From IMG/VR virus record IMGVR_UViG_3300025030_000041, positions 62,001-126,000 of that record: DNA of 64,000 nt. One strand, given 5' to 3'. Numbering within the stretch: position 1 is the stretch's first letter; each line of letters begins with the position of its first letter. A model generated the notes under the pieces. That model saw only the letters and a program-made list of their open reading frames with translations, did no database searches and had not been told where the DNA came from. The position numbers were made by a program, and so were the translations under genes. This document shows, piece by piece, positions 1 to 17,921 of the stretch.

Positions 1-190
1 TAATAATATCAAGTCTTTTCCTTTTAAATACACAGACCCTGATGGATTTTATATGGCAATTGAATATAACGAACATGAAATGACTAAATTTAAATTAAAA
101 ACCTTAATTAAATATAAAAAATAATTAATTTAATATCAATTAGTTATATTTTTATTTAAAAATAGGTGAAACAAATTAAAGATAAATTAA

Positions 191-198
191 TATATTTG
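191..198 (+). promoter_or_regulatory. Bacteroidota-type -7 promoter box (TAnnTTTG)
   Basis: TATATTTG about 40 bp upstream of the ATG at 237. Confidence 0.5.
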
Positions 199-236
199 CA
201 GTATAACAATCATTATTAACTTAAAACAATTAAAAA

Positions 237-458
237 ATGAAAACAAACAAACTGAAAACTGCTGTTAAAGCCGTTGCAAAAGTAACAAAAGGAAGTAGTG
301 ACGTAGTTCGTAAGATTAAAGTAGGTGATTATACTAAGATTGCTAGAGCGACTGGGTATGACTACAGCCATGTATGGAGAGTTATTAATGGAGAGTCTAG
401 TAATCCATCAGGAGAAATTATGAAATACACCGCTACGGTTATTAAAAACAGAAAATAG
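237..458 (+). CDS. small basic HTH DNA-binding protein
   Basis: YTKIARATGYDYSHVWRVING resembles an HTH; has its own promoter box and terminator. Confidence 0.6.
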   Translation: MKTNKLKTAVKAVAKVTKGSSDVVRKIKVGDYTKIARATGYDYSHVWRVINGESSNPSGEIMKYTATVIKNRK

Positions 459-480
459 TGAGTATTTTTTAAATTTATAA

Positions 481-510
481 AAATAGCCTAATTTTTAATT
501 AGGCTATTTT
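481..510 (+). terminator. intrinsic terminator
   Basis: aaatagcctaatt/aattaggctattt inverted repeat followed by T run. Confidence 0.75.
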
Positions 511-873
511 TATTTTAATGCTTATACGTATACCAATAGTTAAATTCAAATGATTATAGAACTAATAATTTTCTTTTTAAAAGTTTGGTCTATTTTATGG
601 ACTATACTTTTAGTTTTAATAATATATTCTAGTGCTGTGTTAAACTTAAAAAGACTAGAATTTAACCTTAATTTGAAAACCTGTGCGGAATTATCGCTGT
701 ATATTACTTCAATATACACATGGTTTTTATAAAAAAGATAAAAATACCAACTATTGATTATAAATAGCAAGTTGCAACGGAAACTTAATGGTGTCAAAAA
801 TGTCATTTCAGAGTATTATCATAGATATTTTCTTTACTACGTTATATATAGGGGTGATTTAAAACTATAAAAA

Positions 874-1116
874 ATGATAACAGAAAAAGAATACTTAAAA
901 GCAAAAATGATTGTTGAAGCATATGAATGTGAGCAATTGAATAAACCTGCTAGTATAAGCCATATGAAGTGCTGCGACAACCAAGATATAGAAATATTTT
1001 ATAAAAACACCAGTAATAAGGATGGGAGTGGAAGAATGGGTGTTACTCATAAGATATTTAAATGCAAGAATTGTGTTATGCAATCGGCTTTTATTTGTCA
1101 AATGTTTAATAATTAA
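874..1116 (+). CDS. hypothetical cassette-type protein (Cys pairs)
   Basis: ORF; N-terminus MITEKEYLKAK nearly identical to the 13345 ORF. Confidence 0.6.
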   Translation: MITEKEYLKAKMIVEAYECEQLNKPASISHMKCCDNQDIEIFYKNTSNKDGSGRMGVTHKIFKCKNCVMQSAFICQMFNN

Positions 1117-1141
1117 ATACTTAAAAAATAAAAACAGAATT

Positions 1142-1429
1142 ATGTTAGAAAACGAAAACTTGAATGAACCACAAAAAACGCAATTGAATATAAGTGAGGT
1201 TAGCCACAATTGTATTTGTTGCGGAAAAGAAATAAAGAAACTTGATGGACTGCCAAAAGATAAGGATTGGGAAGGTATGTGGAATGGTGGAATAGTTGAA
1301 AAGATAAGTGCTGGGTATGGCAGTTTACTTGATGGAGATATGTATGTTTTGGCTATATGCGATGACTGTGTAAAGTTGAAACAGCTAAAATACGTTGGTA
1401 ACTATATGTTCCCAGACAATTGTGACTAA
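1142..1429 (+). CDS. hypothetical cassette protein (CxxC pairs)
   Basis: Likely start ATG 1142 inside ORF 1022..1429; stop TAA is part of a TAAC site. Confidence 0.65.
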   Translation: MLENENLNEPQKTQLNISEVSHNCICCGKEIKKLDGLPKDKDWEGMWNGGIVEKISAGYGSLLDGDMYVLAICDDCVKLKQLKYVGNYMFPDNCD

Positions 1430-1571
1430 CTGATGACACTAACAGTCAGGTGGGGATTAAATGCACCGTACTTTCACTTGACGATAAGCTTCATTAGACA
1501 CAAGATAGCTTCAATGTGACACAAGCCCCCACTTGCTGTTATTGTATGTTATGGAGCGTTTATTGCCATCA
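1199..1571 (+). mobile_element. solo integron-like cassette array A (degraded)
   Basis: GTTAGCCACAATTGT 1199 / ACAATTGTGACTAAC ending 1430; hairpin TAAC1427-N5-arm...arm-N2-GTTA1548. Confidence 0.7.
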
Positions 1572-1675
1572 CAAATAATTATAAAAGATAATATGATTTA
1601 ACATTTAAGAATCCTAAAAAGTTAAGCAAAATAAAAATAGTAATCTAAATAAATAAAAAGAAAGGGATTAATTTA

Positions 1676-1996
1676 ATGAAAAAATATGTTAAAATCTTTG
1701 AAGATTTTATAAAAGACTCCGCCAATAATATTTATAATGAAGATTTAACTGAAATTATAGGCTGGCTATTAAAATACGGAAAATCTAAATCTGGAGAATC
1801 TGTAGAAGATGAATTAATTAAATTTAAAAAAGAGTTAAATACTAAAGGCATTGGCCAAGAGACTACTGATTTTTATGAATTAGAACAATACATTAGCAAA
1901 GATGAAAAAATAGTAATTATAGACAGCCTATTTAATATATTTTTAAATTTAAATGATTATTATAGAATTAATATGATAGGTAAAAACATCAGTTAG
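1676..1996 (+). CDS. hypothetical protein with MKKYVKIFEDF leader
   Basis: ORF; shared N-terminal motif. Confidence 0.7.
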   Translation: MKKYVKIFEDFIKDSANNIYNEDLTEIIGWLLKYGKSKSGESVEDELIKFKKELNTKGIGQETTDFYELEQYISKDEKIVIIDSLFNIFLNLNDYYRINMIGKNIS

Positions 1997-2037
1997 CATT
2001 TATACAGTAGAAGGAGATTGATTAAATTGGACAGGGT

Positions 2038-2412
2038 ATGAAAGATTTTATAAATTATATTAAAGAAAATAAAAAATATCCGTCTGGATTAAATATTTTT
2101 ATTGATATTGATAAAACAATTGCAATTTTAGATATTGATAAATATGGATTAGATTATTCTAAGAGCGAGCCTATTATAGAAAATATAGAAATAGTAAATG
2201 AGTTATATGATGCTGGAAATACTATAACATTTTATTCAGCTCGAGGCGCATCTTCTAAAATAGATTGGACTGTTGAAACTATAAAACAGTTTAATAGATG
2301 GGGAGTTAAATATCATAAAATAGATTTAACAAAACCTAATTATGATATTTTCATAGACGATAAAGCAATTAATAATTTTAAAGAATTAGATTCCTATTTA
2401 AAACAATTTTAA
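2038..2412 (+). CDS. HAD-superfamily phosphatase
   Basis: DIDKT motif I, SAR motif II, KP...FIDDKA motifs III/IV. Confidence 0.8.
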   Translation: MKDFINYIKENKKYPSGLNIFIDIDKTIAILDIDKYGLDYSKSEPIIENIEIVNELYDAGNTITFYSARGASSKIDWTVETIKQFNRWGVKYHKIDLTKPNYDIFIDDKAINNFKELDSYLKQF

Positions 2413-2488
2413 CAGTTTTTAATAAAATTTTTGAGTAAATGTTAAATTAACCTTTGTTATTTTAGCTTAAAAATAACTTTAATTATAA

Positions 2489-3145
2489 ATGGTAAATCAA
2501 TTCGATTATAATAGTAATAAAGAAACTGATGAATTAAATAACAGAAATGCTGAAACTGATCCATCCAACGATATTCATAATTTGCCCGAAACTGATATAG
2601 ACTATTCTAGACATACCTCTATTGAAGAGGTATCTGATTTAAATTGGGAAATACATTTAGAAAAAGCAAAGCATAATAAAATTTATAATACGTCATATAA
2701 TGACGGAAATAATTTAAAAGATCCATGTGAATATGAATACGGTAAGTCACTTCAAATTGACGCGTCTTACTCAAATTTATATATGGAAAATTATGAACCT
2801 GCTAAATTTATTATTAATAACATCTCGCAAAAACATATAGAGTCATATATAGAAAATAATGAAGATATTAGAACCTTATTAAATTTAAATAAAACATTAG
2901 AAAAAAGAAAATTTAATAAACAAGAAATCAATACTATTTTTTCAATGATTCTTGCTGAAGTTAAACCAATATGCAATGATTATACATTTATTAGTATATT
3001 TGATACAGTAAGTAAATATACTAATATCAATTATAAAAAATTATTTGATTTTTTAGATTATCAATATAAAGAACTAATAATTTTAGAATTAAACGAAGAA
3101 TATAATATTTTAAATAATTATAATAATTTTAACGATTTTTTTTAA
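2489..3145 (+). CDS. hypothetical protein
   Basis: 218 aa ORF. Confidence 0.7.
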   Translation: MVNQFDYNSNKETDELNNRNAETDPSNDIHNLPETDIDYSRHTSIEEVSDLNWEIHLEKAKHNKIYNTSYNDGNNLKDPCEYEYGKSLQIDASYSNLYMENYEPAKFIINNISQKHIESYIENNEDIRTLLNLNKTLEKRKFNKQEINTIFSMILAEVKPICNDYTFISIFDTVSKYTNINYKKLFDFLDYQYKELIILELNEEYNILNNYNNFNDFF

Positions 3146-3148
3146 ACA

Positions 3149-3505
3149 ATGTTTATAGAACATAAAAAAGAAGCAGAGCTAAAAGACAATATTTGGGTTA
3201 ATACTATCCAATTATTAAAGTCAAAACAAGAACAATCTTATCTTTTTAATAATAAATATGGTAAATTTAATATTAAAAAACTAGATGACTATAAAATCAT
3301 AATAGAATTTTTAAATACTACATTATCTAATCTAGATAATACAGGTTTTACAATTACATCACATGATTATGATAGCATTAGTATTAAATCAAATATAATA
3401 GGGTCATCTATAGAATCTATTCCTAATAGAGATACTTTAGAAATACTTTTTGAAATTATTTCCATAGAATTAAAAAAGGAAAAATTTAAAGCCTTAGAAT
3501 TTTAA
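3149..3505 (+). CDS. hypothetical protein
   Basis: 118 aa ORF, tightly packed. Confidence 0.65.
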   Translation: MFIEHKKEAELKDNIWVNTIQLLKSKQEQSYLFNNKYGKFNIKKLDDYKIIIEFLNTTLSNLDNTGFTITSHDYDSISIKSNIIGSSIESIPNRDTLEILFEIISIELKKEKFKALEF

Positions 3506-3506
3506 A

Positions 3507-4337
3507 ATGAAATCTGCAGTATTTATTGATGCTTCAAATTTAATGCACCGGGCATTACGTATCCCTTTTGCATGGAATAGTGTTAAGAATGATCCTAATA
3601 GTAATGCCGCAGTATATTTATTTGTAAATATATTCCATAAATTATATAAAGATAATGAAGGCCGAGATTTATTTTTTGTATTAGATGGATCACCTATACA
3701 AAAAAAGTCTGAATATTCTCAATATAAAGGAAATAGACAGAAATTAGATAATATATATTATCAACAGATGAATAAAATGAAGTCTATTCTTACTAATTTT
3801 CCTATTAAAACTGCATATTGTAAAGATCGAGAAGCTGACGATATTATATACTACTTATGTAAAAATCTAAATTCAAAATACCATGAAATTTTTATTATAA
3901 GTAATGATAAAGATTTTATTCAATTAAAACAACAATTTAATAATATTAAAATATATGACCCGATTAATAATTGTTTTAGAGAACTTCCTGATAAATTAAC
4001 GGGTAAATTTACAGATTATAAGGCTTTAACAGGAGATCCTAGTGACAATATAATTAAAATATTAAGTGAGTCTAAAGCGTTTAAAGCAGCAAATGGCATA
4101 GATAAATGGAAAAGCCTAGCGAGTGACGCCCAACTAAAGCAATATATCCAAAATATTACACTAATTGATTTTACCTTATTAGATTTTTCAGGATTAGAAA
4201 TTGAGAATACTGAATATACTTTTAATAAAGAAAATATAAAAACTTTATTTGAAGAATATAAATTTAATTCAATACTTAAGAAATTTAATGAATGGTCTCA
4301 CGTATTTGAACCAAGTATTTTTAATTCATTATTTTAA
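3507..4337 (+). CDS. 5'-3' exonuclease / T4 RNase H-like (FEN family)
   Basis: FIDASN, YKGNR, EADD, SNDKDF, LTGDPSDNI motifs. Confidence 0.9.
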   Translation: MKSAVFIDASNLMHRALRIPFAWNSVKNDPNSNAAVYLFVNIFHKLYKDNEGRDLFFVLDGSPIQKKSEYSQYKGNRQKLDNIYYQQMNKMKSILTNFPIKTAYCKDREADDIIYYLCKNLNSKYHEIFIISNDKDFIQLKQQFNNIKIYDPINNCFRELPDKLTGKFTDYKALTGDPSDNIIKILSESKAFKAANGIDKWKSLASDAQLKQYIQNITLIDFTLLDFSGLEIENTEYTFNKENIKTLFEEYKFNSILKKFNEWSHVFEPSIFNSLF

Positions 4338-4354
4338 AACTAGGGGTTATTCTG

Positions 4355-4570
4355 AAAATTGATACACCTAGCAAAGAATTAAGTGATGCTGACTTTGTAA
4401 AACTTAGTGAGTTTATACGTTCACATTATGGTATAAATATACTGTATCTAAAAAAGCATGTTACAGGTACGTTTGCAAACCAGATTAAGAAAAAACAACA
4501 TTCTTACTTTTAAAGAGTATTGTAATTTTGTTTTCTCCGGTAAAAATAATGATTCAGAAGTTGTACGCGT
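4355..4570 (+). pseudogene. cheR: frameshifted fragment resembling the N-terminal domain of chemotaxis methyltransferase CheR
   Basis: Hand translation ELSDADFVKLSEFIRSHYGINI.../MLQVRLQTRLRKNNILTFKEYCNFVFS...EVV. Confidence 0.6.
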
Positions 4571-4714
4571 AATTAGTTGAAGATTATGACCGTTTATCGT
4601 TTAGTATATTAATTATCAATTAATTATATTTAATTGATATATTTAGTTCAAAAATAAAGTACCTAAAAAATTTAATATATCAAAAATATTTCTTATTTTT
4701 GTATTAAATATAAC
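4571..4714 (+). repeat. promoter cassette copy 1
   Basis: ttatcaattaattatattt...tttagttcaaaaataaagtac...ttcttATTTTTGtattaaatataac; matches the other copies. Confidence 0.85.
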
Positions 4715-4776
4715 ATGGGCATAAAAGAAATGCCGAAATTAGAAGTACAAATTATCAATTTAAAACAAAAGTAAAT

Positions 4777-5043
4777 ATGAAAAACAAAACATCAATTTTA
4801 GTAGGAGCTCGGCATTTCTTTTATGCCTTATTAGTAGCTGTTATTTTTTGCGGTTGTGGAAACGGTGAAAATTCAGTGAATGGAGAAATAGAATATAGAA
4901 CAATTGTTGTAGATAGCTGTGAGTATATTGTAAAGTATAATGGCTATCAAAGAGGGTATATGTTTTCTCACAAGGGAAATTGTAAATACTGCTACAAACG
5001 TACCCCCATTTTGGTTAGTTGCGTGAAAATATTACAAAATTAA
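4777..5043 (+). CDS. putative lipoprotein (cassette)
   Basis: Hydrophobic stretch followed by FCGC lipobox-like motif; starts inside a hairpin loop. Confidence 0.6.
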   Translation: MKNKTSILVGARHFFYALLVAVIFCGCGNGENSVNGEIEYRTIVVDSCEYIVKYNGYQRGYMFSHKGNCKYCYKRTPILVSCVKILQN

Positions 5044-5192
5044 ATTGAAACATGGATGATAAATTGGATTAAAAACTTATTTAAAAGCAGGGGAAAAACA
5101 ATTAACTAAACATGTTGTTATACACAGTATTTTGTTGGTGGGATTTGACAAATTAAAAATAAATTAGCATATTTACAAAAAAAATAAAAATT

Positions 5193-5504
5193 ATGAAAGA
5201 ATTATTTGAAAAACAATTAAACGGAACACAACCATTAACAAAAGATGTTTTAGAAAAATTACAAGTTAAAACATATTTTAATGGTGAAGAAAAACAAATT
5301 GGTGAAGTTGTATTAATGGCGATGTTAATGGGTGAAGTAATTGAAAAGGAAGGTGAATATCCAAAAGTACCATTAAAATTAATAACATTAAACGAAAGCC
5401 ATTTTAATTTATTTGAATATGATGAAAGATTTAATAGAGGTAATAAATTACCAACAATTAAATTGAAACCTTTAGTTGTGGTGGGTAAAAAATATTGCGT
5501 ATAA
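5193..5504 (+). CDS. hypothetical cassette protein
   Basis: ORF ending in TAA of TAAC. Confidence 0.65.
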   Translation: MKELFEKQLNGTQPLTKDVLEKLQVKTYFNGEEKQIGEVVLMAMLMGEVIEKEGEYPKVPLKLITLNESHFNLFEYDERFNRGNKLPTIKLKPLVVVGKKYCV

Positions 5505-5564
5505 CGTCCACAGGTATATATAGTTGCGTAAATAACATATAAAATTAATTAAAAGCGATAAAGT

Positions 5565-5798
5565 ATGAAAACAGATAAAAGTAAATTAGAAGAACAAAAG
5601 CAGCAATTGGATATACATGTTGTTAGCGGTAGTTTAACTCATATTCCTTTGTTTCAATATAATGTTGCTGTTGAATCACACGGGAATACATTAGAACTAT
5701 TGCGAATTATACAAAACGATAAAAAGGAATTAAAAGAAGAGTTAGAAGCAACATATAAAGAAATTGATAGGTTAAAGGCTAAACTAAATTACTGCTAA
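5565..5798 (+). CDS. hypothetical cassette protein, coiled coil
   Basis: QLDIHVVSGS is the translated recombination-site arm. Confidence 0.7.
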   Translation: MKTDKSKLEEQKQQLDIHVVSGSLTHIPLFQYNVAVESHGNTLELLRIIQNDKKELKEELEATYKEIDRLKAKLNYC

Positions 5799-5801
5799 TG
5801 G

Positions 5802-6065
5802 ATGAGTATAAATTTAGTAAAAATAATACAAATGAAGAATAAAGATAAACTTTGGAATTTTGTTTATGAACAAGAACCAAGACTAATGGGAGAACCATTT
5901 GGTAGATTTAACGTTAAAGTAGAAAAAGATTTTTTTATTATAGAATGTGAATTACTTACAAACTTGGAAAATCCATTTATAAATACAGAATTGAAAAAGT
6001 GTAAGGTTGATCAAAAATCTTTTACTAATTGGAAGAACAAACAAAATTCTATTATTTTTTATTGA
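5802..6065 (+). CDS. hypothetical protein encoded inside a hairpin unit
   Basis: ORF lies between and overlaps arms agtataaatttagtaaaa / ttttattgaatttatact; start may be the later Met. Confidence 0.65.
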   Translation: MSINLVKIIQMKNKDKLWNFVYEQEPRLMGEPFGRFNVKVEKDFFIIECELLTNLENPFINTELKKCKVDQKSFTNWKNKQNSIIFY

Positions 6066-6281
6066 ATTTATACTTTGTTATGTTTAACGAAGTATAGTTG
6101 TGAGAAGCGAACAATTAAACATAACGGTTGGGTGTATATGTAATGTGAGATTTGAAACACTAAACTTGAATTAACCACAAATGATGATTAGAAGTAGGAT
6201 TGTTGAATATACCACTGAACCTCACATTACATATACACCTTGTTATGTGTAGTACGGTGTTAAACTTAAATTTTAAAACTT

Positions 6282-6578
6282 ATGGATACAATAAAAATTA
6301 AATTAGAAAGTGGAAATGAATATAAATTACCAGACATTTCATCAGAAAAGTTTGATGAATATGTTTGGAAAAGTGGTAGTAATGACGTTGAATATGAGAA
6401 ATATAAACGTGAAAACGGAATGATGGAATTAACTGACTTTAATTCTCAAACGACTAGTGAAATCACATTAGTGGTAGAACAATCTTGGAGAGGTAGAGTT
6501 TTAAAATTTAAGTGTGTTTATGATTTTGATAACGATGAAAACTTTGATGAAAAGGAATATTTCGGAGAACATGAGTAG
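6282..6578 (+). CDS. hypothetical acidic cassette protein
   Basis: ORF inside GTTATGTGTAGTAC...GTATTACACATAA body. Confidence 0.7.
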   Translation: MDTIKIKLESGNEYKLPDISSEKFDEYVWKSGSNDVEYEKYKRENGMMELTDFNSQTTSEITLVVEQSWRGRVLKFKCVYDFDNDENFDEKEYFGEHE

Positions 6579-6587
6579 TATTACACA

Positions 6588-6697
6588 TAAATATTATATA
6601 TATATATATACATGTATGTTTAAACTATAATAAAATCAATAGTATGAACGAAAAAATTATAAAGATTTGTAAACAAAAACTTATATATTTAACGTAA
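6588..6697 (+). pseudogene. attI-like terminal site plus putative truncated integrase start (MNEKIIKICKQKLIYLT)
   Basis: Near-identical inverted copy at 46900-47002; same layout as the site upstream of the intact integrase. Confidence 0.55.
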
Positions 6698-6752
6698 TGT
6701 AAAAAACTATTTTGATACATTAAAAATAATTAGTTATAATAGAGTCTAGTAT

Positions 6753-7403
6753 ATGGAATTTAATAAATTTATTAATATACACACTGATAAAACTGCAATA
6801 ATCTGTGGGTGTGGTCAGTCTTTAAATCTTATTAAAGACCGAGTAGATATACTAAATAATGAGAATATAATTACAATAGGAGTAAATGATGTTGCTAAAT
6901 TATTTACTCCTACTTATACGGTGGTTGTAGATTCTCCTAATAGATTTACTAACAATAGAAACTTGCTTATTACAAAAAGTAGTAGCTATATTTTTACACA
7001 AATCGTTGATTGGAAAATTGAATCTGGAAAAAAAGTATTATTTAAACTTGGATTAAAATCTAAATTAGAAAATCTTTATGATAAAAATAATATTATAGAT
7101 TATAGTAATAACTCTCCATATATGGCATGTATTATTGCATATAAAATGGGGTGTCATACAATCGCATTAATTGGAGTAGATTTTACATTAAATCATTTTT
7201 ATGCAGAAGATGGTGAACATAATTTAATTAAAGCAAATAGACTGAATGAAATTAATAATGATTATATAAATTTATATAATGCTTTCAAAATAAAAAATGT
7301 AAATTTATATAATTTAAGTGAAAATAGTAAAGTATTAGGTATACCTAAGCTTAATATTAATGAAATATTAAAAATACATACTAATAATGAAAGTAATAAC
7401 TAA
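6753..7403 (+). CDS. DUF115/MptE-like (glycosyltransferase-related) protein
   Basis: AIICGCGQSL, TIGVN, IALIGVDF motifs. Confidence 0.6.
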   Translation: MEFNKFINIHTDKTAIICGCGQSLNLIKDRVDILNNENIITIGVNDVAKLFTPTYTVVVDSPNRFTNNRNLLITKSSSYIFTQIVDWKIESGKKVLFKLGLKSKLENLYDKNNIIDYSNNSPYMACIIAYKMGCHTIALIGVDFTLNHFYAEDGEHNLIKANRLNEINNDYINLYNAFKIKNVNLYNLSENSKVLGIPKLNINEILKIHTNNESNN

Positions 7404-7623
7404 AGAATTAAAAGAAGTAGACGTACTTAAAGATATAGTGTGTGACTCATGTGGTAAAATGTGTAATACGGAGTATGGATTTGAATATCTAAAATTAAGT
7501 GCAAATTGGGGATTTGGAAGTTCTAAAGATTTGAAAGAATGGAACGCTCACCTTTGCGAAAACTGTACAGATAAAAAACTAGATTTTATTAAATTCAAAA
7601 TTACAAACTACCATCCATTATAA
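7387..7623 (+). CDS. hypothetical zinc-binding protein
   Basis: CDSC...CENC. Confidence 0.65.
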   Translation: MKVITKELKEVDVLKDIVCDSCGKMCNTEYGFEYLKLSANWGFGSSKDLKEWNAHLCENCTDKKLDFIKFKITNYHPL

Positions 7624-7634
7624 ATAAATATATT

Positions 7635-7841
7635 ATGACTACTGAAACCTTAGAACACATAAAAAACTTATATTCTACTCAAGATGAATATAGAGCTAAA
7701 AGTAATGAATTTAAAATAAAGGGATTATTATCAGATGACCCTAATGAAAAAATAAGTCTTAAAAAACAGGAAAGCCTATATTTTGAAAAAATGTCGGATA
7801 TTAATTCTAAAATAACTAAAATACTAAATCAAGAACAATAA
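7635..7841 (+). CDS. hypothetical protein
   Basis: ORF. Confidence 0.55.
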   Translation: MTTETLEHIKNLYSTQDEYRAKSNEFKIKGLLSDDPNEKISLKKQESLYFEKMSDINSKITKILNQEQ

Positions 7842-7879
7842 TTCTAAATAAACTATTATAAATTCTAATTTTTTAAAAT

Positions 7880-8197
7880 ATGTCAGGCGGACACTTTGAT
7901 TACCAGCAATATCATGTTAGTAATATTGCAGATTCTATTGAAAATGAACTTAATAAACAGGGTACTTTAAAACCAAAGGATGAGCTATATTATACCGATG
8001 AGTATTATAGTAAATATCCTGATGAAAAATATTATGCAGCTTATCCTATTGAAATTCAAGAAAAAATGAAAGATGCTATAAAAATACTAAGAACTGCTGC
8101 AATATACGCTCACCGAATTGATTGGTTATTATCTGGAGATGATGGAGAAGAGTCTTTTCTTGAAAGATTGAAAGAAGAACTTGATAAATTAGAATAA
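7880..8197 (+). CDS. hypothetical phage protein
   Basis: ORF with MSGGHFDY start and DWLLSGDDGEESF. Confidence 0.75.
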   Translation: MSGGHFDYQQYHVSNIADSIENELNKQGTLKPKDELYYTDEYYSKYPDEKYYAAYPIEIQEKMKDAIKILRTAAIYAHRIDWLLSGDDGEESFLERLKEELDKLE

Positions 8198-8236
8198 TTA
8201 AAATTCTATTAATTTAAAAATTGAATAAATAATAAC

Positions 8237-8827
8237 ATGGAATATGTTAAATTATTTGAAGCTTACCATAATATTATAAATGTTCCACTACCTCGAGTTT
8301 ATAGTAAAGACAAAAAATTTAGTTCTGCAGTTAATGGAAATAATAACACATTATCTCCTATTGGTTTTTATGAAATTAAAAATGCAATAGAAGAAAAAAT
8401 ACCGTTTACAATTATAACAGTTTGGAATAATAAAAATAAAGAAATTGATAACAAATTATTAATAGAAGAACTTTCTATAAATTTATTAAAACTTAATTTT
8501 AAATTTGCAGTACAAGAAGGAGTAACGCGAGCTGAAGATAATATAGGAGATAGACAAAAACTTAAATTTGAACAAAATATTTTTATATTGAAACCTAAAG
8601 AAATGTCAGATATTAATTTTTTAAGAATGATTAAATCTATAGTAGAATCAAATAAACAAACTAAATTTATATATGGGTTTACTAAAAAAAGAGATGGTAT
8701 TTTTCTATGGAGAAAAAATCAAAAATCTATAAAAATTGGTAAAGAACTGATAAATAGCACCGAGTACTTACCTGAAGACTTAGAGTGTTATTTTAATATT
8801 AATGGAATAAAATATATTTTTATTTAA
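8237..8827 (+). CDS. hypothetical protein with MEYVKLFE leader
   Basis: ORF preceded by AATAAATA. Confidence 0.7.
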   Translation: MEYVKLFEAYHNIINVPLPRVYSKDKKFSSAVNGNNNTLSPIGFYEIKNAIEEKIPFTIITVWNNKNKEIDNKLLIEELSINLLKLNFKFAVQEGVTRAEDNIGDRQKLKFEQNIFILKPKEMSDINFLRMIKSIVESNKQTKFIYGFTKKRDGIFLWRKNQKSIKIGKELINSTEYLPEDLECYFNINGIKYIFI

Positions 8828-8873
8828 TTTATTTTTATACTTTTACAAAAACTATTTACTAAATCGTTTTTTA

Positions 8874-9652
8874 ATGGATACTGATATTGAGACTAACTGT
8901 CTGCAAAAAAAGATGGTAATTTAATACATAATTTAATACCTAAATTTAAATACGAAAATAATTGGATAGCAGGAGGGTGTATTAGAGATATTTTAGATAA
9001 TACTAAATATAATGATATAGATATTTTTTCAAAAAATAGAGAAGACTCTATACGCTTTATAATAAACAATAATTTGCTAGATACTTATGAGATTTCTTTA
9101 GAACATTCTAAAAATAAAAAAGAAAGAAATCTTATTAAATATATTAAAGATGAAGTCTCTACTAAAAACCATAAACCTCTACTTAATTTACGTAATGATC
9201 CAAGAGTGTATAAATTAGATTTTATCAATAACGATAATCATATTCAAGTAATGATAGGCCAAAACTATCCCACTATAGAGTCTTGTATTTATGATTTTGA
9301 TTTTACCATATGCCAGTTTGGGTTTGATGGAAATGATATATATTACTTTGATAATTCAATTAATGATTTACAACAAAAAATAATTAAATTAGCAAAAATT
9401 AAAAATAATAGATTTATATACTTTGAAAGAATAATTAAGTTTTTGAATAGAGGATATAAATTAGATAAAGAATCTTATGAGTTTATTATTAAATCACAAC
9501 CTAGTCTTGAATATTTACAAGAAACTGGAAGAGCCTTAGACTGCGACTTTTTTAAATATATTAATAGTAAAAACTTAAGTGAGACGTTATTAAAAAATAA
9601 AATATCATTATTACATTTAGATGGAATGCTAAACACTACAAATTTAATTTAA
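8874..9652 (+). CDS. tRNA nucleotidyltransferase / poly(A) polymerase-like protein (needs a -1 frameshift near 8906-8912)
   Basis: WIAGGCIRD...NDIDIF lies in frame upstream of the called TTG 9074; FDFTICQ downstream. Confidence 0.7.
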
Positions 9653-9668
9653 TCTTAAAAACCATTAT

Positions 9669-10274
9669 ATGAAACTACCTGTAAAAAAAAATGAATTAAT
9701 ACAAGAATTATCTATTGAATTTAAAAGAACAAAATCTAAATTAGTTTATAATAAACTATATAACTTAATATTACCGCAAGTTCAGTTATATATATATAAA
9801 ATAGTGAAAGACTATGACGACTCTAATGATATTTCATCAGAAGTTATGATTAAGCTTTGGCAAAAAATTGATATGTATAATGAAAATTGGAGATTTAGTA
9901 CATGGATATATAGTATAGCTAGGTATGACGCCTTACAATTTATAAATTATAAAAAAAATACAGTCACATTAACTATTTTTCATGATACCGGCTCTAAAAA
10001 AGAGTTTAATAGCTTTGAAATCTTTAATTCAGAAAAAGACTTCGAAACTTTATATAATACAGTAGTTTCAGAAATACTTAAATTAAATGGTAGAAAAAAG
10101 GAAGTTCTTATTGACAGGGAAATAAATAGAATGAAATATAAGGATATATCGGTTAAATATAATATAAATATTGATACTATTAAAACCTTAATTCGTCAAT
10201 CACGAATACAGGTTTTAGCTAAATTATCAGAGAAAAAACATATAGTAGAACTAGCAAATGAAATTTTAAAATAA
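9669..10274 (+). CDS. ECF-type sigma-70 factor
   Basis: Region 2 DISSEVMIKLWQKI...FSTWIYSIAR; region 4 MKYKDIS...TIKTLIRQSR. Confidence 0.85.
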   Translation: MKLPVKKNELIQELSIEFKRTKSKLVYNKLYNLILPQVQLYIYKIVKDYDDSNDISSEVMIKLWQKIDMYNENWRFSTWIYSIARYDALQFINYKKNTVTLTIFHDTGSKKEFNSFEIFNSEKDFETLYNTVVSEILKLNGRKKEVLIDREINRMKYKDISVKYNINIDTIKTLIRQSRIQVLAKLSEKKHIVELANEILK

Positions 10275-10282
10275 AATAAATT

Positions 10283-10750
10283 ATGAGACTTTCTATACCT
10301 AATTTTATAAATCCTAACTTTATAATTAACAAATTTTATAATATTGTTTTAGAAGTAAATATTTACTTAAAATATATATCTGCATTAAAACAGATGAAAA
10401 ATAATAAAATAATAGGGGATACCCTAGAACTTAGAAAAGACTATATTAATAGGCTATACTCTGTTATTAATTTACCTCCTGAATTTCTTATAGAAGAAGA
10501 AAATAAAGAAGAATTAAATAGATTAGAGGTAGAATACCTTAAACATGAATTTAAAAAATATAATGACGTTTTTTTAGAATACGGAATACTAGACCTAATT
10601 AAAATGAAAACGGAAAAAATATGTACTAAAGACCATTACGCATTTATAATAAAAATAAAATATAAATGGAATGAAACAAATATAATATGGGTATTATACA
10701 TAGTATTCTTAATTGGCCTATTAATAAAACTATACACTATCTTTTTGTAA
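10283..10750 (+). CDS. hypothetical protein with C-terminal TM helix
   Basis: ORF with hydrophobic C-terminus. Confidence 0.7.
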   Translation: MRLSIPNFINPNFIINKFYNIVLEVNIYLKYISALKQMKNNKIIGDTLELRKDYINRLYSVINLPPEFLIEEENKEELNRLEVEYLKHEFKKYNDVFLEYGILDLIKMKTEKICTKDHYAFIIKIKYKWNETNIIWVLYIVFLIGLLIKLYTIFL

Positions 10751-10815
10751 ATTATCTTTTATAATATAGTAAACCTATTTTATTTTAGATACCTAATACC
10801 AAAAATTTAAGTCAT

Positions 10816-12519
10816 ATGGCAATAGATTTAAACTTACTTAAAGATCATAATACTAGACAAGATTATATTAATACTTTAACTAAAGACGAACTTAAAGCAT
10901 TAATTAATAAACTCAAACTGCAAGATAGTGCATTTAAGATTATATTAAATAGCTATTATGGTTCATCAGGTCAAAATTCCTTCGCATTTTTCAATTTAGA
11001 CATAGCGGCGTCAATAACTTTGCAAGGTCAAGATATTATTAAGTATACGGATAAGGTAATAGAACATTATTTTATTAATGAGTGGCATCTTGATAAAGAG
11101 CTTCATAAAAAATTAAGTATAGATCATTTAAAAATTAATCCTATAAAAATAACAAAAGGGCCACCTATAATATATGTTGACACGGATAGCGTCAACGAAA
11201 ATTCAATAATTTATGTAAAAAATATAGGAAAAATTAAAATTAAAGATTTTTTTAAATTATGTTATAAAATTAATAGTATTATTAAATTAAAAAATGGGAA
11301 TGAGATAATTGGTATTTCTAATTTTAGAATATTAAATTTTAATAATACCTTATATTATGCAAAACCTAAAAAACTGATTAGGCATAAAGTAAAAAAGAAA
11401 AAATGGTTATTGAGGTCTAAGTCTGGAAAATCAATAATATGCACAGAAGATCATTCACTAATTGTATTTCACGATGGAATACAATTAAAAATTAAGCCAT
11501 CTGAAATTAATACAAAAATTGATAAAATTTTAACAATTAACGAATTAGACTTAAATTTTAATTATCAATTTGAAGATATATCTGAATGTAAATGTATAGG
11601 TGAATTCGAAGATGAGTGGGTATATGATATTGAAATGGATGATGCAACTCATACGTTTATTGCTAATGATATTTTAGTTCACAATTCTGGTTATATTAAT
11701 TATGATTATATTATAAAGTCGATAGAGGGGTTTGATACATTAAAAATAAGTCCTATATTATTTGCAGCTGATATAATTAAATATAGGATGAATTCTTATT
11801 TAAATAATAAATTTGAAGAATACGCTAAGTCGTATAATGCAATAAACACCCATGATTTTAAATTAGAGCATATTAGTAATAGTGGTATTTTTATTGCAAA
11901 AAAAAATTATATATTAGATGTTGCATTTGAGGATAGACTATTACCTGAGTCGTATTTATTACCTAAGGGGTTTGATTTAGTAAAAGCGTCTTTACCAAAA
12001 TGGGCACGGGCTAAAGGTACAGAATTAATTAAGATTATTTTAAAGAATGGCGACTCTTTAAATATGGATGAGATATTAAATAAATTATTAGAATATAAAG
12101 AAGAATTTAAAGGGCTACACCCTGATGAGTTTAGTATGAATTTTAATCTACGAACATTTAAAAAATATGTCATTAAAGATGACGATCAATTAGTATTTGC
12201 AAAAGGCGCATCTATCTATCCAAGGTCCGCTGGTTATTATAACCATTTATTATATAAGCAAACTGATAATATACGCAAAAAATATAAAAAGGTAAGAACC
12301 GGAGATAAGGTTAGATTTTATAATTGTATGCCTGATGATACGTATAAGATAGATGCATTTAGTTATTTACCTGGAAAATTTCCAATTGAGTTTGCGCCTC
12401 ACGTAGATTATGATGAGCAATTTAATGTTATTATTTTAAATCCATTGAATAGGGCTCTAGAAGCTATGGATATGCCATTAATAGAAAAAAATGTAATGTA
12501 TTTTAATGATTTGTTTTAA
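10816..12519 (+). CDS. family B DNA polymerase, C-terminal subunit (split gp43-like), intein-containing
   Basis: KIILNSYYG (motif B), YVDTD/S (motif C), KKNY, KG; no exonuclease or motif A. Confidence 0.9.
   Translation: MAIDLNLLKDHNTRQDYINTLTKDELKALINKLKLQDSAFKIILNSYYGSSGQNSFAFFNLDIAASITLQGQDIIKYTDKVIEHYFINEWHLDKELHKKLSIDHLKINPIKITKGPPIIYVDTDSVNENSIIYVKNIGKIKIKDFFKLCYKINSIIKLKNGNEIIGISNFRILNFNNTLYYAKPKKLIRHKVKKKKWLLRSKSGKSIICTEDHSLIVFHDGIQLKIKPSEINTKIDKILTINELDLNFNYQFEDISECKCIGEFEDEWVYDIEMDDATHTFIANDILVHNSGYINYDYIIKSIEGFDTLKISPILFAADIIKYRMNSYLNNKFEEYAKSYNAINTHDFKLEHISNSGIFIAKKNYILDVAFEDRLLPESYLLPKGFDLVKASLPKWARAKGTELIKIILKNGDSLNMDEILNKLLEYKEEFKGLHPDEFSMNFNLRTFKKYVIKDDDQLVFAKGASIYPRSAGYYNHLLYKQTDNIRKKYKKVRTGDKVRFYNCMPDDTYKIDAFSYLPGKFPIEFAPHVDYDEQFNVIILNPLNRALEAMDMPLIEKNVMYFNDLF
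11188..11685 (+). mobile_element. mini-intein (166 aa) in DNA polymerase motif C
   Basis: Starts at S after YVDTD, block B CTEDH, block F VYDIE, ends LVHN followed by S; no endonuclease domain. Confidence 0.9.
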
Positions 12520-12907
12520 ATATGAAGATATTAAAGATAAAGCCTTACTATCTAAATTAATAAAAGAAGAGGCTGATAGGATATTTAATTCTAGTATTGC
12601 AAGAAGGCATAGAAGTTATGACATAATATCCAATAATGTCAAATTAGGTAAAACGGCTGAAGTATGGTTATATGAAAATTTCAATTATAAATTTACAAAT
12701 GACATTTATACAGATTTACTAACAGATAGGGGCAATATAATAGAAGTAAAAGTAAAAAGAATTAAAAATCTTAATTGTTTAAATGACCAAATACAAAATG
12801 ACCTTGAAAAAATTAAAAGTTCAAATGTAAATAATTCAACAGTTTATATATGCTTCTCATATAATGACAATATATATAAATTAGAAAAAATAATAAAACT
12901 AACATGA
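12506..12907 (+). CDS. putative PD-(D/E)XK nuclease
   Basis: GKTAE...TDLL...IIEVK. Confidence 0.5.
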   Translation: MICFKYEDIKDKALLSKLIKEEADRIFNSSIARRHRSYDIISNNVKLGKTAEVWLYENFNYKFTNDIYTDLLTDRGNIIEVKVKRIKNLNCLNDQIQNDLEKIKSSNVNNSTVYICFSYNDNIYKLEKIIKLT

Positions 12908-13131
12908 TACAAGTTATTAAATATGCATGTTGTGATAAAATATTTGCAGCATGCCATGAACCTCACTGCTACACTGATACTGACTGGCTTAAAAACCTAA
13001 AACAATATGTTAGGCGAGGCGATAAAGTGGAAATGATACATGGTGGAAATGGACTCCAAATGGGTCAATGCGAGTGTAATGAATTAGTGAAAAGTAAAGA
13101 CCTAAACTTATTTAGTAAAGCAACACAATAA
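12904..13131 (+). CDS. hypothetical Cys-rich protein
   Basis: ORF overlapping the previous stop (ATGA). Confidence 0.6.
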   Translation: MIQVIKYACCDKIFAACHEPHCYTDTDWLKNLKQYVRRGDKVEMIHGGNGLQMGQCECNELVKSKDLNLFSKATQ

Positions 13132-13169
13132 AACTATTCAGTTTAGCCTCACCCATATATAATACACAA

Positions 13170-13301
13170 AGAGTATTATATTTATCATTTAGTAGATTGA
13201 TTATCAATTAATTATATTTACTTGTTATATTTAGTTCAAAAATAAAGTACTAAAAATGTTAATATATCAAAAACATTTCTTATTTTTGTATTAAATATAA
13301 C
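13170..13301 (+). repeat. promoter cassette copy 2
   Basis: agtagattgattatcaattaattatatttacttGTTAtatttagttcaaaaataa...ttatttttgtattaaataTAAC. Confidence 0.9.
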
Positions 13302-13344
13302 AGTTTGCAGGTTTATTTAGTTGCGACTTTAAAAACGAAAAATT

Positions 13345-13515
13345 ATGATAACAGAAAAACAATACTTAAAAGCGAAAAAGTTAATTGCAGACTACGAAAG
13401 CCAGCAATTGAATAAACATGTTGTTATAAGCAGTAAGCCGACCTCAAAAAAGAAGAAGGTGATTATAGATGCAGATAAATTTTCAAAGATGTGTGATGTT
13501 ATTAAACGGATATAG
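13345..13515 (+). CDS. hypothetical cassette peptide, 56 aa (not in ORF track)
   Basis: MITEKQYLKAKKLIADYESQQLNKHVVISS... Confidence 0.65.
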   Translation: MITEKQYLKAKKLIADYESQQLNKHVVISSKPTSKKKKVIIDADKFSKMCDVIKRI

Positions 13516-13587
13516 GCTTATTGCTGCTAACGTTCATCAGATATATTCAGTTCTGATTTTAATATATAACTAAAATAAATTAATAAG

Positions 13588-13845
13588 ATGAAAGATAGAA
13601 AACATATAAAAACATTTGAAGATAAGACATCAGAATTGAATATATCTGATGTTATAAGTAGTAAAACTAAGGAAGAAATTCTAAAATTGATAAAAAGTTT
13701 AGATGATAGAGGGTATTTTTATATTTTCAATAATAGAGAGGATTTTGTAGAGGGTAGAACAGATTGGGATGATTTAAAAGATACTTGTGAAAACTTTTAT
13801 TATGTTATTGAAAATATAAAAGAATTAATAGAAAGAAATGAGTAG
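13588..13845 (+). CDS. hypothetical cassette protein with KHIKTFED leader
   Basis: ELNISDVISS is the translated site. Confidence 0.7.
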   Translation: MKDRKHIKTFEDKTSELNISDVISSKTKEEILKLIKSLDDRGYFYIFNNREDFVEGRTDWDDLKDTCENFYYVIENIKELIERNE

Positions 13846-13925
13846 TTTTATTACTTATAACGTGCCGCAGCTTGACGCTGTTGGCGATTTGAAACACGAA
13901 TTTTAATTAAACAACAAAAGTAAAT

Positions 13926-14270
13926 ATGGAAACGAAAACTTCAATTAACAACGAAACCGCCAATAGCGTTCAAGGTACTGTTAGGCGTAGGGCGGACATC
14001 AATCAGGAGATTGCCGAAAAATGGGAATTAATCGCTCAAATCAAAACAGAAATAGTTGCCTTGAAAAAAGAGGAACTTCTATTGTGTGATGACCACCAAA
14101 GATTTGAGGAAACGGAAGAAGAAATAACAATTTCAAGGCGACCAAAGAAAACCGAAAAGCGATTAATTGGGCGTATTCATTGGAAGGAAGAATTTAAGGA
14201 TGAAGATACAGAGCAATCTATTTGGATTGAGCGTTCACAGGTTGTTCGCGTCAATGGTGTGTGGCAGTAG
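13926..14270 (+). CDS. hypothetical cassette protein
   Basis: ORF; more GC-rich than the backbone. Confidence 0.75.
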   Translation: METKTSINNETANSVQGTVRRRADINQEIAEKWELIAQIKTEIVALKKEELLLCDDHQRFEETEEEITISRRPKKTEKRLIGRIHWKEEFKDEDTEQSIWIERSQVVRVNGVWQ

Positions 14271-14382
14271 CCTTACGCCTAACGTTTTGCGTATATGTGA
14301 AGTACGCATAGCAGAAACTTGAAATTAAATACAAACCTTAATGGCGTATTTCACATATACGCTGTTAGCAAATCGTAAAATT

Positions 14383-14559
14383 ATGACTAAGAAAGATATT
14401 TTAAAATTAGTAGAAGAAACATTCAGCGAAGAAATTTCAACTTCTTGTGCTGAAACTGTATTAGGACTTGAAAGTTGGATTGATGGTAAAGAAGAATTTA
14501 TGGAAAAGTTAGCAGAGAAGTTGAAATTGTTATTTGATGATAACGACTTATCTAAATAA
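14383..14559 (+). CDS. hypothetical cassette protein
   Basis: Start at 14383 or 14341. Confidence 0.6.
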   Translation: MTKKDILKLVEETFSEEISTSCAETVLGLESWIDGKEEFMEKLAEKLKLLFDDNDLSK

Positions 14560-14571
14560 TTTTATGTTTGC

Positions 14572-14731
14572 TAACGTTCTGTAAATATGATTAGTTGAAG
14601 AGTACTGTCATTTATAATTTAGTAGATTGATTATCAATTAATTATATTTACTTATTATATTTAGTTCAAAAATAAAGTACTAAACGTGTTAATATATCAA
14701 AAATATTTCTTATTTTTGTATTAAATATAAC
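14572..14731 (+). repeat. complete promoter-only cassette (copy 3)
   Basis: TAAC-gttct-GTAAATATGATTAGTTGA...TCAATTAATTATATTTAC-tt-ATTA-body-TAAC; no ORF. Confidence 0.9.
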
Positions 14732-14757
14732 GGCTACAGATAAACTCAGTTTTTATT

Positions 14758-14979
14758 ATGGAAAAGAAAATATATTACGAAAACAATTGGTTAAATCAGC
14801 ACTTAAATAAAGTTGGATTGCTCGATAAAAAATTGAGTTTATCTGATGTTATGTGTTGTGTTTGTGGGTCGGAACTCACAATTCAAGAGAATGAAGAAAA
14901 TCTAACTTATGATGTTAGAGAACGAATATGTGATAAATGTAATAGTGAGTTGAGCGAGGAAAGAAAACATTGCATATAA
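14758..14979 (+). CDS. hypothetical zinc-ribbon cassette protein
   Basis: CCVC...CDKC; stop is part of TAAC. Confidence 0.7.
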   Translation: MEKKIYYENNWLNQHLNKVGLLDKKLSLSDVMCCVCGSELTIQENEENLTYDVRERICDKCNSELSEERKHCI

Positions 14980-14997
14980 CGGCATCCGCTATGAGTA

Positions 14998-15291: not shown

Positions 15292-15300
15292 CATTACCGC

Positions 15301-15320
15301 TAACTATTATATATATACAA
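15301..15320 (+). other. attI-like terminal recombination site (TAAC-TAT-(TA)5)
   Basis: Last TAAC has no partner hairpin and lies 37 bp before the integrase ATG. Confidence 0.6.
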
Positions 15321-17908: not shown

Positions 17909-17921
17909 CTAAATTAAAAAA

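Follow-up and report, generated by a model that had tools for sequence, protein, structure and literature searches.

Integrons are regarded as bacterial gene-capture platforms defined by IntI. In classical integrons, such as class 1 mobile integrons and the sedentary chromosomal integrons of Vibrio, mostly ORFan cassettes are separated by imperfect hairpin sites (attC) with conserved AAC...GTT outer boxes, an unpaired spacer, a stem with fixed mismatches, and a variable loop, in which structure rather than sequence is conserved. The cassettes are circularly permuted, so that the end of each is complementary to the inner box of its own site, and an attI site lies next to the tyrosine recombinase gene. 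Cassettes that lack an ORF or bear a promoter exist, as do CALINs, clusters of attC sites lacking an integrase. A survey of 10,705 GenBank phages with IntegronFinder and HattCI found 3 complete integrons captured from hosts in temperate phages and 17 short CALINs, with attC-type sites and small CALINs in virulent phages, including a Flavobacteriia phage (Polaribacter phage P12002L), and showed that phage attC sites recombine with attI1 through IntI1 (Qi et al. 2023, PMC9892861). IntegronFinder 2.0 reported almost no integrons in Bacteroidetes (PMC9024848). A different type of mobile regulatory cassette, the PeSL of T4-type phages, combines a repeated promoter module with stem-loops that bracket small novel ORFs in plastic regions of large phages and is proposed to drive modular shuffling (PMC2839356, PMC4122927).

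Here we analyzed array B, located at 4567-6697 of a 64,000-nt window (positions 62,001 to 126,000 of IMG/VR record IMGVR_UViG_3300025030_000041). The record is a lytic-looking jumbo phage genome of 246 kb and 26% GC from a groundwater metagenome, and its host is probably a Bacteroidota bacterium. The original prediction described array B as an integrase-less, CALIN-like array that is decaying or being fixed. Its sequence claims were all confirmed and its interpretation is supported, with two qualifications. The associated recombinase is Xer-like and fails the IntI membership tests, so that "integron" is an analogy in mechanism and not a family assignment, and the array retains an attI-like end and a recombinase stub, making it a degenerate complete element rather than a pure CALIN.

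Organization of array B

To define the architecture of array B, we examined each unit and its boundaries; all array B features below are on the plus strand. The region consists of six modular units, one ORF-less promoter cassette and five ORF cassettes. Each unit begins just after a TAAC box (R'') with a folded site composed of the TAAC box, a 3-6 nt spacer, a 10-22 bp stem, a loop, the returning stem, a 1-3 nt spacer, and a GTTRRRY box (R'). The end of the unit is complementary to its own R' box, and joining the two ends of a unit would therefore rebuild a complete site. Five of the six units match in all three variable bases of this box, while unit 3 matches in 2 of 3.

Unit 0 (4567-4714) is the promoter cassette. 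Its 5' boundary box (4560-4566) is degenerate, reading GTTGTAC where other long-form copies have YTATAAC or YGCTAAC. The unit holds a degenerate folded site with a 4-nt deletion in the left arm and R' GaTATAT, a palindrome around TTATCAATTAA, and a Bacteroidota-type -7 box, TATTTTTG, at 4694-4701, and ends in R'' ATATAAC (4708-4714). About 17 copies with 85-97% identity are present in the genome, and in these the homology always ends at the TAAC box and is followed by a different hairpin. In intact copies the 5' part is itself a 92-nt site. Promoter function is inferred from position, orientation, and the -7 motif; a sigma-70 scan was uninformative (19 sites against 20.7 expected), the two "terminators" it found being the small palindromes inside the arms of site 1, and none of the listed runs that hold the stretch is on record as RNA.

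Site 1 (4708-4836), of the 132-nt class, has R'' ATATAAC, perfect 19-nt arms at 4718-4736/4809-4827, spacer TT, and R' aTTAGTA, in which the invariant G is mutated to A at 4830. Contigs in three other metagenome runs read G at this position. A covariance model built only from other contigs (R1) scored the site at 71.3 bits (E 3e-12) against 13.9 bits on the minus strand, and the DNA fold was -21.8 kcal/mol (z -6.1). The cassette 1 ORF (4777-5043) encodes an 88-aa predicted lipoprotein with a signal peptide and lipobox; it starts in the loop of site 1, reads through the right arm and R', and ends inside site 2. It matched phrog_19356 (E 4e-10) and showed 76% DNA identity to a Cellulophaga phage Nekkels gene. 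Site 2 (4993-5123) is decayed, with R'' TACaAAC (4993-4999; invariant T mutated), an eroded stem, and R' GTTATAC (5117-5123). It corresponds to the "frameshifted leader" noted at about 5057-5120 in the original prediction. It scored 33.9 bits (E 1e-4) and folded no better than shuffles (z +2.3), although its R' still complements the unit's own end GTATAAC at 5499-5505. The cassette 2 ORF (5193-5504; 103 aa) belongs to no known family. Site 3 (5499-5628) has R'' GTATAAC (5499-5505), a weak stem, and R' GTTAGCG (5622-5628); it scored 68.2 bits, with 9 pairs in the strict scan and a fold z of +0.5. Homologous hairpins occur in other samples with breaks at 5511 and 5626. The cassette 3 ORF (5565-5798; 77 aa) starts in the loop of site 3 and reads through R', giving the recurring HVVSGS peptide.

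Site 4 (5793-6083) has a giant loop. It comprises R'' TGCTAAt (C mutated to T at 5799), spacer GGATG, arms 5805-5823/6056-6074 with 17 of 19 positions paired, a 232-nt loop, spacer TT, and R' GTTATGT (6077-6083). We examined whether these arms could arise by chance in AT-rich sequence, the alternative raised with the original prediction. None of 200,000 shuffles and none of 200,000 random genomic windows reached 17 pairs (maxima 15 and 16; P below 5e-6), and the arms sit at exactly the offsets demanded by the site grammar, 5 nt after the TGCTAAt box and 2 nt before GTTATGT. The cassette 4 ORF (5802-6065) lies wholly inside the loop of site 4; it is 87 aa from 5802, while gene callers use the 77-aa form from 5832. 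Homologs with 59-86% identity were found in 7 other protein clusters, and in one related locus (L172) it is a free-standing gene with no such hairpin. Contigs in three other runs join 5819-5823 to 6050-6060, suggesting that they may carry the same arms without the ORF-bearing loop. The ORF-less "mini-body" of cassette 4 (6084-6118) is flanked by boxes 6077-6087 and 6115-6125, the cassette's own R' and its own distal end, which are 11 of 11 complementary; the 49-nt stretch 6077-6125 has 11-nt perfect arms (z -3.6). Related mini-bodies sharing GAAGCGAAC lie at genome 46.8 kb and 158.3 kb.

Site 5 (6119-6248) is fully intact, with R'' ACATAAC, spacer GGTTG, arms 6131-6152/6218-6239, spacer TT, and R' GTTATGT. 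The perfect 19-nt arms 6131-6149/6221-6239 extend to 22 nt at 95%. It was the best R1 hit in the window (100.5 bits, E 4e-18, against 23.7 bits on the minus strand; fold z -5.8), and paralogs at genome 159947 and 179599 have compensated stems. The cassette 5 ORF (6282-6578; 98 aa) belongs to no known family, and a 23-codon reading frame (6182-6253) starts in the loop of site 5. The distal end of cassette 5, TACACATAAa (6582-6591), is 9 of 10 complementary to its R' at 6242-6251 and has the invariant C mutated to A, whereas the paralogous copy at window 46901-47003 (minus strand) keeps TAAC. Contrary to the original prediction, the array is not bare of integrase traces. It ends in an attI-like junction region (6592-6643), which begins with TATTATATATA and ends with AATAAAATCAATAGT and is present in 3 copies in this genome, followed by a 17-codon stub of a recombinase gene (6644-6697; MNEKIIKICKQKLIYLT and a stop) matching the N-termini of full-length relatives (M..KICEQKLNYLN).

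The mutated cores listed in the original prediction are real point changes at positions invariant in 70 related sites: aTTA at 4830, CAAAC at 4995-4999, TAAT at 5796-5799, and TAAA at 6588-6591. In total, three of six downstream TAAC boxes and two GTT boxes carry such mutations, two stems no longer fold better than shuffles, and the array's own recombinase gene is truncated. Only sites 5499 and 6119 keep both boxes, so at most units 3 and 4 together could still be moved in trans. The candidate trans-acting enzyme is an intact 271-aa Xer-like tyrosine recombinase at 15341-16156 (+), 8.6 kb away; five sites lie in 4708-6248. It adjoins array A (13181-15304, +), which contains two promoter cassettes and six ORF cassettes, has all TAAC boxes intact, and ends in CCGCTAAC joined to TATTATATATA. 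A second recombinase paralog lies at genome about 234.5 kb on the minus strand.

Rfam at a permissive threshold over 1-20000 gave only one sub-threshold chance hit and ARAGORN found no tRNA, indicating that the hairpins are not known RNAs. Pfam, NCBIfam, and PHROGs gave nothing for the cassette ORFs except the phage lipoprotein family for ORF 4777, and a CheR-like assignment of 4346-4501 was not supported. The flanking MptE-like gene recovered only a 99.99% identical contig, which shows no variation.

Folded sites and the Xer-like recombinase in related viral contigs

To examine whether the sites form a system, we scanned the genome for the site grammar. A first loose hairpin scan was only weakly enriched (about 26 sites against 14 expected) and was replaced by an asymmetric-spacer grammar, which detected 27 strict sites in the genome against about 3.8 per strand in 40 Markov simulations (maximum 8). 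These cluster in arrays and are co-oriented with genes. A 231-bp unit is present three times at 99% identity with unrelated flanks, the breaks falling exactly at TAAC, and other samples carry single related modules with breaks at unit borders. In 67 distinct related viral contigs, 285 of 298 sites lie upstream of a Xer-like tyrosine recombinase on its strand and 13 lie elsewhere. A perfect 3-of-3 match between the R' box of a unit and its own end was observed in 201 of 237 neighboring site pairs, against 9% for controls, namely 21 of 237 for the box on the same hairpin and 8.5% for random pairs. However, 15% of site pairs, and the 56-aa unit of array A, break this rule. Among 70 sites, TAAC and GTT are invariant, 16 of 23 pairs show compensatory changes, including an inner stem for which the scan did not select, and G.T pairs are conserved in 66 and 69 sites. 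The R1 model recognized four array B sites strand-specifically, with at most 24 bits on the minus strand of the same sites.

A conserved junction, TAAC followed by TATNNTATA, lies 26-103 nt before the recombinase in 39 of 61 viral loci, with only 52 occurrences in 1.64 Mb. Two related loci, L022 and L023, have 100% identical recombinase and junction, being identical over 1229 nt from the TAAC boundary onward, but carry unrelated cassettes immediately upstream. The last cassette of L022 carries a 13-nt duplicate of its neighbor's end, which the simple model does not predict. When the ends of segments shared between loci were compared, left ends piled up at TAAC boxes, but right ends mostly fell at R' boxes or in undetected sites; this test is only half informative, and its random control had an artefact for loci with a single site.

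The 271-aa recombinase matched PF00589 (4.7e-38) but was below the cut-offs of every NCBIfam model, including TIGR02249 (169.8 against 265, in two stretches) and NF011946 (108 against 435). Its best sequence matches are archaeal XerA and bacterial XerC/D (4a8e at 1.9e-36, 5hxy at 1.7e-34; NF040815 at 193.9 bits), the closest solved structures are archaeal XerA proteins, and the catalytic motifs are conserved in the alignment. Against VchIntIA (2a3v), query residues 180-203 stand opposite residues 180-249, so that about 46 aa of the IntI-specific region are missing. Xer proteins resolve chromosome dimers at a single dif site, whereas here the gene sits at the end of arrays of up to 13 folded sites within the 6 kb upstream that was examined. 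Bacterial relatives with 40-48% identity (Flavobacterium, Algoriphagus, Chitinophaga, Nitrospirota MAGs) have a recombinase of about 268 aa that also lacks the insert, with sites of the same grammar and length classes, and the own-end rule was obeyed in the three arrays inspected. In these the array lies downstream of the recombinase with the sites on the opposite strand and the ORFs co-oriented with the recombinase, that is, the canonical ORF-then-site cassette. Relative to the sites, both the ORFs and the recombinase gene are flipped in the phage version.

Comparison with integrons and alternative explanations

These results suggest, with good confidence, that array B is a largely immobilized array of integron-type gene cassettes. 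Recombination itself is inferred by analogy with integrons: the recombinase would fold the sense strand of a site, cut between AA and C of the 5' box, excise units as circles, and insert them at the junction. No recombination event was observed directly, and no circular cassettes or junction polymorphism were seen in the source sample; all runs holding the phage are assembled contigs. Because the recombinase lacks the IntI-specific domain that binds extrahelical bases in classical integrons, the folded single-strand mechanism also remains an analogy. Strand choice appears to be encoded here by asymmetric spacers and fixed G.T pairs rather than by the extrahelical bases of classical attC sites. 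In classical integrons, promoterless cassette ORFs are expressed outward from a Pc promoter at the integrase end. In the 67 viral loci, by contrast, the ORFs run antisense to the canonical polarity, towards the recombinase, with the site at their 5' end and often containing the start codon. Promoter modules are themselves cassettes at the distal end, and transcription is inferred to run from there through the cassettes towards the recombinase.

Earlier phage reports describe captured host integrons or two- to four-site CALINs; a multi-array, self-encoded system with promoter cassettes was not part of the survey of Qi et al., and no cultured phage in the 2025 collection carries a close relative of the recombinase (best match 36% identical). 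It is more likely than not that uncultivated jumbo phages of Bacteroidota carry their own integron-like gene-capture system, in which promoters would circulate as cassettes and one genome can hold several arrays at different stages of life and decay. Array B would be a fossil of one such platform. Cassette capture by folded-site recombination would then be a phage strategy for accessory-gene turnover, served by an independent or deeply divergent lineage of integron-type machinery.

We considered whether the hairpins are RNA elements only, such as RNase III processing sites, mRNA stabilizers, or translation-initiation platforms, in units duplicated by ordinary recombination next to a recombinase that serves another purpose. 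The conserved sense-strand G.T(U) pairs, the strong strand asymmetry with sites always sense to the ORFs in phages, and the start codon in the loop in 74 of 128 sites of the 132-nt class would fit selection on RNA structure, and the long stems with internal mismatches may resemble phage RNase III sites such as those of T7 early mRNA. However, the same sites in bacterial relatives lie antisense to the cassette ORFs, so they cannot act there as sense-strand mRNA elements. RNA function also does not explain homology breaks exactly at TAAC, the link to the 5' end of a tyrosine recombinase, or identical recombinase modules joined to different cassettes. This explanation is unlikely, although a dual role remains possible.

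Still less likely is a PeSL-like origin, in which promoter and stem-loop repeats shuffle ORFs by homologous or illegitimate recombination with no dedicated recombinase. A multi-copy promoter module does head arrays of small ORFan genes separated by stem-loops in a large phage. However, the hairpin stems differ in sequence between units while conserving structure and share only 4-7-nt boxes, offering little homology for recombination, and the AAC/GTT boxes, own-end complementarity, attI-like junction, and recombinase linkage have no counterpart in PeSLs. Finally, miniature transposable elements (MITEs) or chance palindromes, suggested by the perfect 19-nt inverted repeats about 72 nt apart at two places in a 26% GC genome, are contradicted by the absence of target-site duplications, by arms that differ between copies while spacing and flanking boxes are fixed, and by shuffles and random windows that never reach the observed pairing.

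Genomic context and the plan of the sites

The IMG/VR virus record that includes the window (bases 62001-126000) is 246,115 bp in length, with an estimated completeness of 92% and a GC content of 26%. It represents a tailed phage, and the window encodes a major head protein, a head maturation protease, a baseplate wedge protein, a DNA polymerase, and a 5'-3' exonuclease. Distant DNA matches were to Tenacibaculum and Cellulophaga phages, and the sequencing runs that contain the record are groundwater metagenomes. Within the polymerase gene (10816-12519), the segment 11342-11687 showed 72% DNA similarity to the intein-containing split DNA polymerase region of Tenacibaculum phages PTm1 and PTm5 and to Lak megaphages.

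We first examined the sequence features described for array B in the original prediction, and every one of them was correct. The two perfect 19-nt inverted repeats were present. The promoter cassette at 4571-4714 was one of about 17 copies with 85-97% identity, all but one of which were followed by co-oriented ORFs; homology always stopped at ...AAATATAAC, and a different hairpin followed in each copy. The arms around the ORF at 5802 paired at 17 of 19 positions, at exactly the offsets used by the other sites, whereas none of 200,000 shuffles and none of 200,000 random genomic windows reached this value, so that these arms are not explained by chance. The 49-nt mini-body had 11-nt perfect arms.

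The intergenic elements shared a common plan, consisting of a YTAAC box (R''), a spacer of 3-6 nt, typically GGTTG or GTTTTG, a stem of 10-22 bp with a loop and the return arm of the stem, a spacer of 1-3 nt, and a GTTRRRY box (R'). A strict scan for this plan detected 20 sites on the plus strand and 7 on the minus strand of the genome, compared to 3.8 per strand in Markov simulations (maximum 8). The sites clustered in about eight arrays, always in the orientation of the genes, and fell into length classes of about 54, 94, and 132 nt.

To examine structure and strand, we aligned 70 sites of the 132-nt class, none of which came from this genome. The consensus had 23 pairs, 16 of which showed compensatory changes, including an inner 7-bp stem that was not required by our scan. 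TAAC and GTT were invariant, and two G.T pairs were conserved in 66 and 69 of 70 sites. On the opposite strand these would be A.C mismatches, and together with the unequal spacers they make the site asymmetric. Covariance-model scoring had been proposed in the original prediction, and a model built from this alignment was run without filters on the whole window. The model detected sites of array B at 6119-6248 (100.5 bits), 4708-4836 (71.3 bits), 5499-5628 (68.2 bits), and 4993-5123 (33.9 bits), and those of array A, the array that abuts the intact recombinase gene, at 25-95 bits, whereas the reverse strand of the same sites scored at most 24 bits.

Modular units bounded at TAAC boxes

To investigate whether the units are cassettes, we compared their copies within the genome. 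A 231-bp unit carrying a 56-aa ORF occurred three times with 99% identity, and identity began and ended exactly at TAAC boxes. Its flanks were unrelated, with a promoter cassette, a mini-body, or an ORF unit on the left, and another unit or a recombinase gene on the right. In metagenome contigs from three other studies, single modules of array B recurred with homology breaks at unit borders (4714/4716, 5511/5626, and 6122/6250).

We further examined the relatives of the recombinase encoded at 15341-16156, of which 217 with about 50-57% identity were found in IMG/VR contigs of up to 362 kb. In 67 distinct loci, 285 strict sites lay upstream of the recombinase on its strand, only 13 lay anywhere else, and the ORFs ran towards the recombinase. 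The three variable bases of each R' box were perfectly complementary to the R'' box of the next site, which is the far end of the same unit, in 201 of 237 pairs. Against the R'' box on the same hairpin the figure was 21 of 237, equal to random pairing at 8.5%. This is the circular-permutation signature of integron cassettes, mirrored, and joining the ends of a unit at AA/C (the slash marks the joint) would rebuild a complete site.

The arrays ended in a conserved junction, TAAC/TATNNTATA, located 26-103 nt before the recombinase start in 39 of 61 loci, and this pattern occurred only 52 times in 1.64 Mb. Two of the loci, L022 and L023, were 100% identical over 1229 nt starting exactly at that junction, yet carried unrelated cassettes immediately upstream. 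The junction-proximal cassette of L022 (5540-5944), however, was flanked on both sides by the same 13-nt end (TATTACTTCTAAC) and broke the rule of complementarity to its own end. It looks like an insertion that duplicated the end of its neighbor, which is not predicted by the simple crossover model.

By analogy with integrons, we infer that the recombinase acts on the folded sense strand, cleaves within AA/C of the 5' box, releases circles, and inserts them at the junction. The 145-bp repeat is also inferred to be a promoter; it has what appears to be a Bacteroidota-type -7 box, TAnnTTTG, at 4694-4701, and it would drive the array towards the recombinase. An added role of the hairpins at the RNA level is plausible, but it cannot explain the findings at the DNA level.

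Anatomy of array B and other array ends

Unit 0 (4567-4714) is the promoter cassette, and its own hairpin and R' box are degenerate. The preceding 230 nt or so between the exonuclease gene and this unit (4338-4566) held only a broken reading frame with no family match and no site, and may be a remnant of an older unit. Unit 1 has a stable site (4708-4836, z -6.1), but its R' box reads aTTAGTA, whereas three other samples read G at 4830, and its far end is TACaAAC. Its ORF (4777-5043) is an 88-aa predicted lipoprotein of a phage family that starts in the loop. This gene (see also locus L010, 1433-1663) shares 76% DNA identity over 134 nt with a hypothetical gene of the 53-kb Cellulophaga phage Nekkels_1, and in other metagenomes the hairpin plus signal-peptide part (4716-4858) is joined to different downstream sequence, as if the site module supplies an N-terminal leader.

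Unit 2 has an eroded stem with no stable fold (4993-5123, z +2.3), but its R' box GTTATAC still matches its far end GTATAAC. Unit 3 has intact boxes at its site (5499-5628) and a weak stem (z +0.5), and its far end is TGCTAAt. Unit 4 has 19-nt arms closing a 232-nt loop that contains the whole ORF, followed by a 35-nt body, and its R' box and far end are 11 of 11 complementary. In three other samples, contigs join the end of the left arm (5819-5823) to a point at or just before the right arm (6050-6060), skipping the loop, although what lies between could not be resolved. A 64%-identical homolog of the ORF stands alone, without such a hairpin, in locus L172, which looks like a bacterial contig. 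Unit 5 has the best site in the window (6119-6248, z -5.8) and a 98-aa ORF, and its far end TACACATAAa is 9 of 10 complementary to its R' box.

Array B ends in an attI-like junction (6592-6643) and a 17-codon stub of a recombinase gene (6644-6697) whose peptide matches the N-termini of full-length relatives. Array A (13181-15304) has all eight TAAC boxes intact, whereas in array B only sites 5499 and 6119 keep both boxes. Array B is therefore a degenerate element. These results support its interpretation in the original prediction as an integrase-less (CALIN-like) array that is decaying or being fixed, with the qualifications that an attI-like junction and a recombinase stub remain and that, as described below, the system is not classified here as an integron.

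The same stub occurred three times in the genome. The copy at 46901-47003 of the window (minus strand) follows an intact TAAC, while that at genome position 50988 matches only from within the attI-like region and lacks the junction. Minus-strand promoter cassettes lay at 48527-48640, 56978-57020, and 60269-60386, and a site lay at 48449-48533 (minus strand, 45.5 bits); together, the elements at 46901-48640 look like another stub-ended array on the other strand. Another short array of the same sites was found upstream of array B at 830-1554 (plus strand), with model hits at 1424-1554 (65.7 bits) and 830-958 (18.3 bits) and a segment at 858-960 related to the 56-aa unit. Outside the window, a 91%-identical remnant of the junction and first codons of the 15341 recombinase (genome 161145-161247) ends the 156-161 kb array, and a second intact paralog (267 aa; about 233.7-234.5 kb) ends the array at 235.6-234.5 kb on the minus strand. 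One genome thus holds at least two live and four dead array ends.

The recombinase and comparison with known systems

The recombinase has the catalytic motifs of tyrosine recombinases, and its best matches were archaeal XerA structures. It fell below the cut-offs of all NCBIfam models, including both integron-integrase models, and lacks about 46 residues where VchIntIA carries the IntI-specific region. No cultured phage in the 2025 GenBank collection has a close relative, the best being 36% identical. Bacterial relatives with 40-48% identity, mostly Bacteroidota, have arrays of the same sites downstream of the gene on the opposite strand, and their ORFs are co-oriented with the recombinase, which is the canonical ORF-then-site cassette in an inverted-integrase layout. 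Relative to the sites, the phage version has both the ORFs and the recombinase gene flipped. As a result, each site lies at the 5' end of its ORF, and in 74 of 128 sites of the 132-nt class the loop holds the start codon.

The logic of the system is that of integrons. However, two defining features are lacking, namely the IntI clade and domain, and the cassette polarity with a Pc promoter. We therefore do not classify it as an integron, although it appears to work like one. No description of this system was found in the literature searched, which did not cover all journals. Captured integrons and short CALINs have been reported in GenBank phages (Qi et al. 2023, PMC9892861), but this system was not among them, and IntegronFinder 2.0 found almost nothing in Bacteroidetes. 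The PeSLs of T4-type phages (PMC2839356, PMC4122927) share the idea of a mobile promoter and stem-loops, but have no recombinase, boxes, or own-end complementarity.

A large family of 400-650-bp paralogous segments with 70-88% identity, on both strands, was present at 27155-33870 of the window (genome 89155-95870) and at more than 15 other places (genome 25.7, 130-152, 164-168, 187, and 209 kb). In the window these segments overlap a run of ORFs of 169-211 aa next to the baseplate gene, and the 120-aa ORF and the baseplate gene itself also fall within the span; they may be a multi-copy structural or receptor-binding module. A perfect (AT)n palindrome with 22-nt arms (34017-34060) sits in the gap between the ORFs 33362-33961 and 34096-39096, both on the minus strand, and short matches to it recur at 6590-6620 and at genome 186.9 kb.
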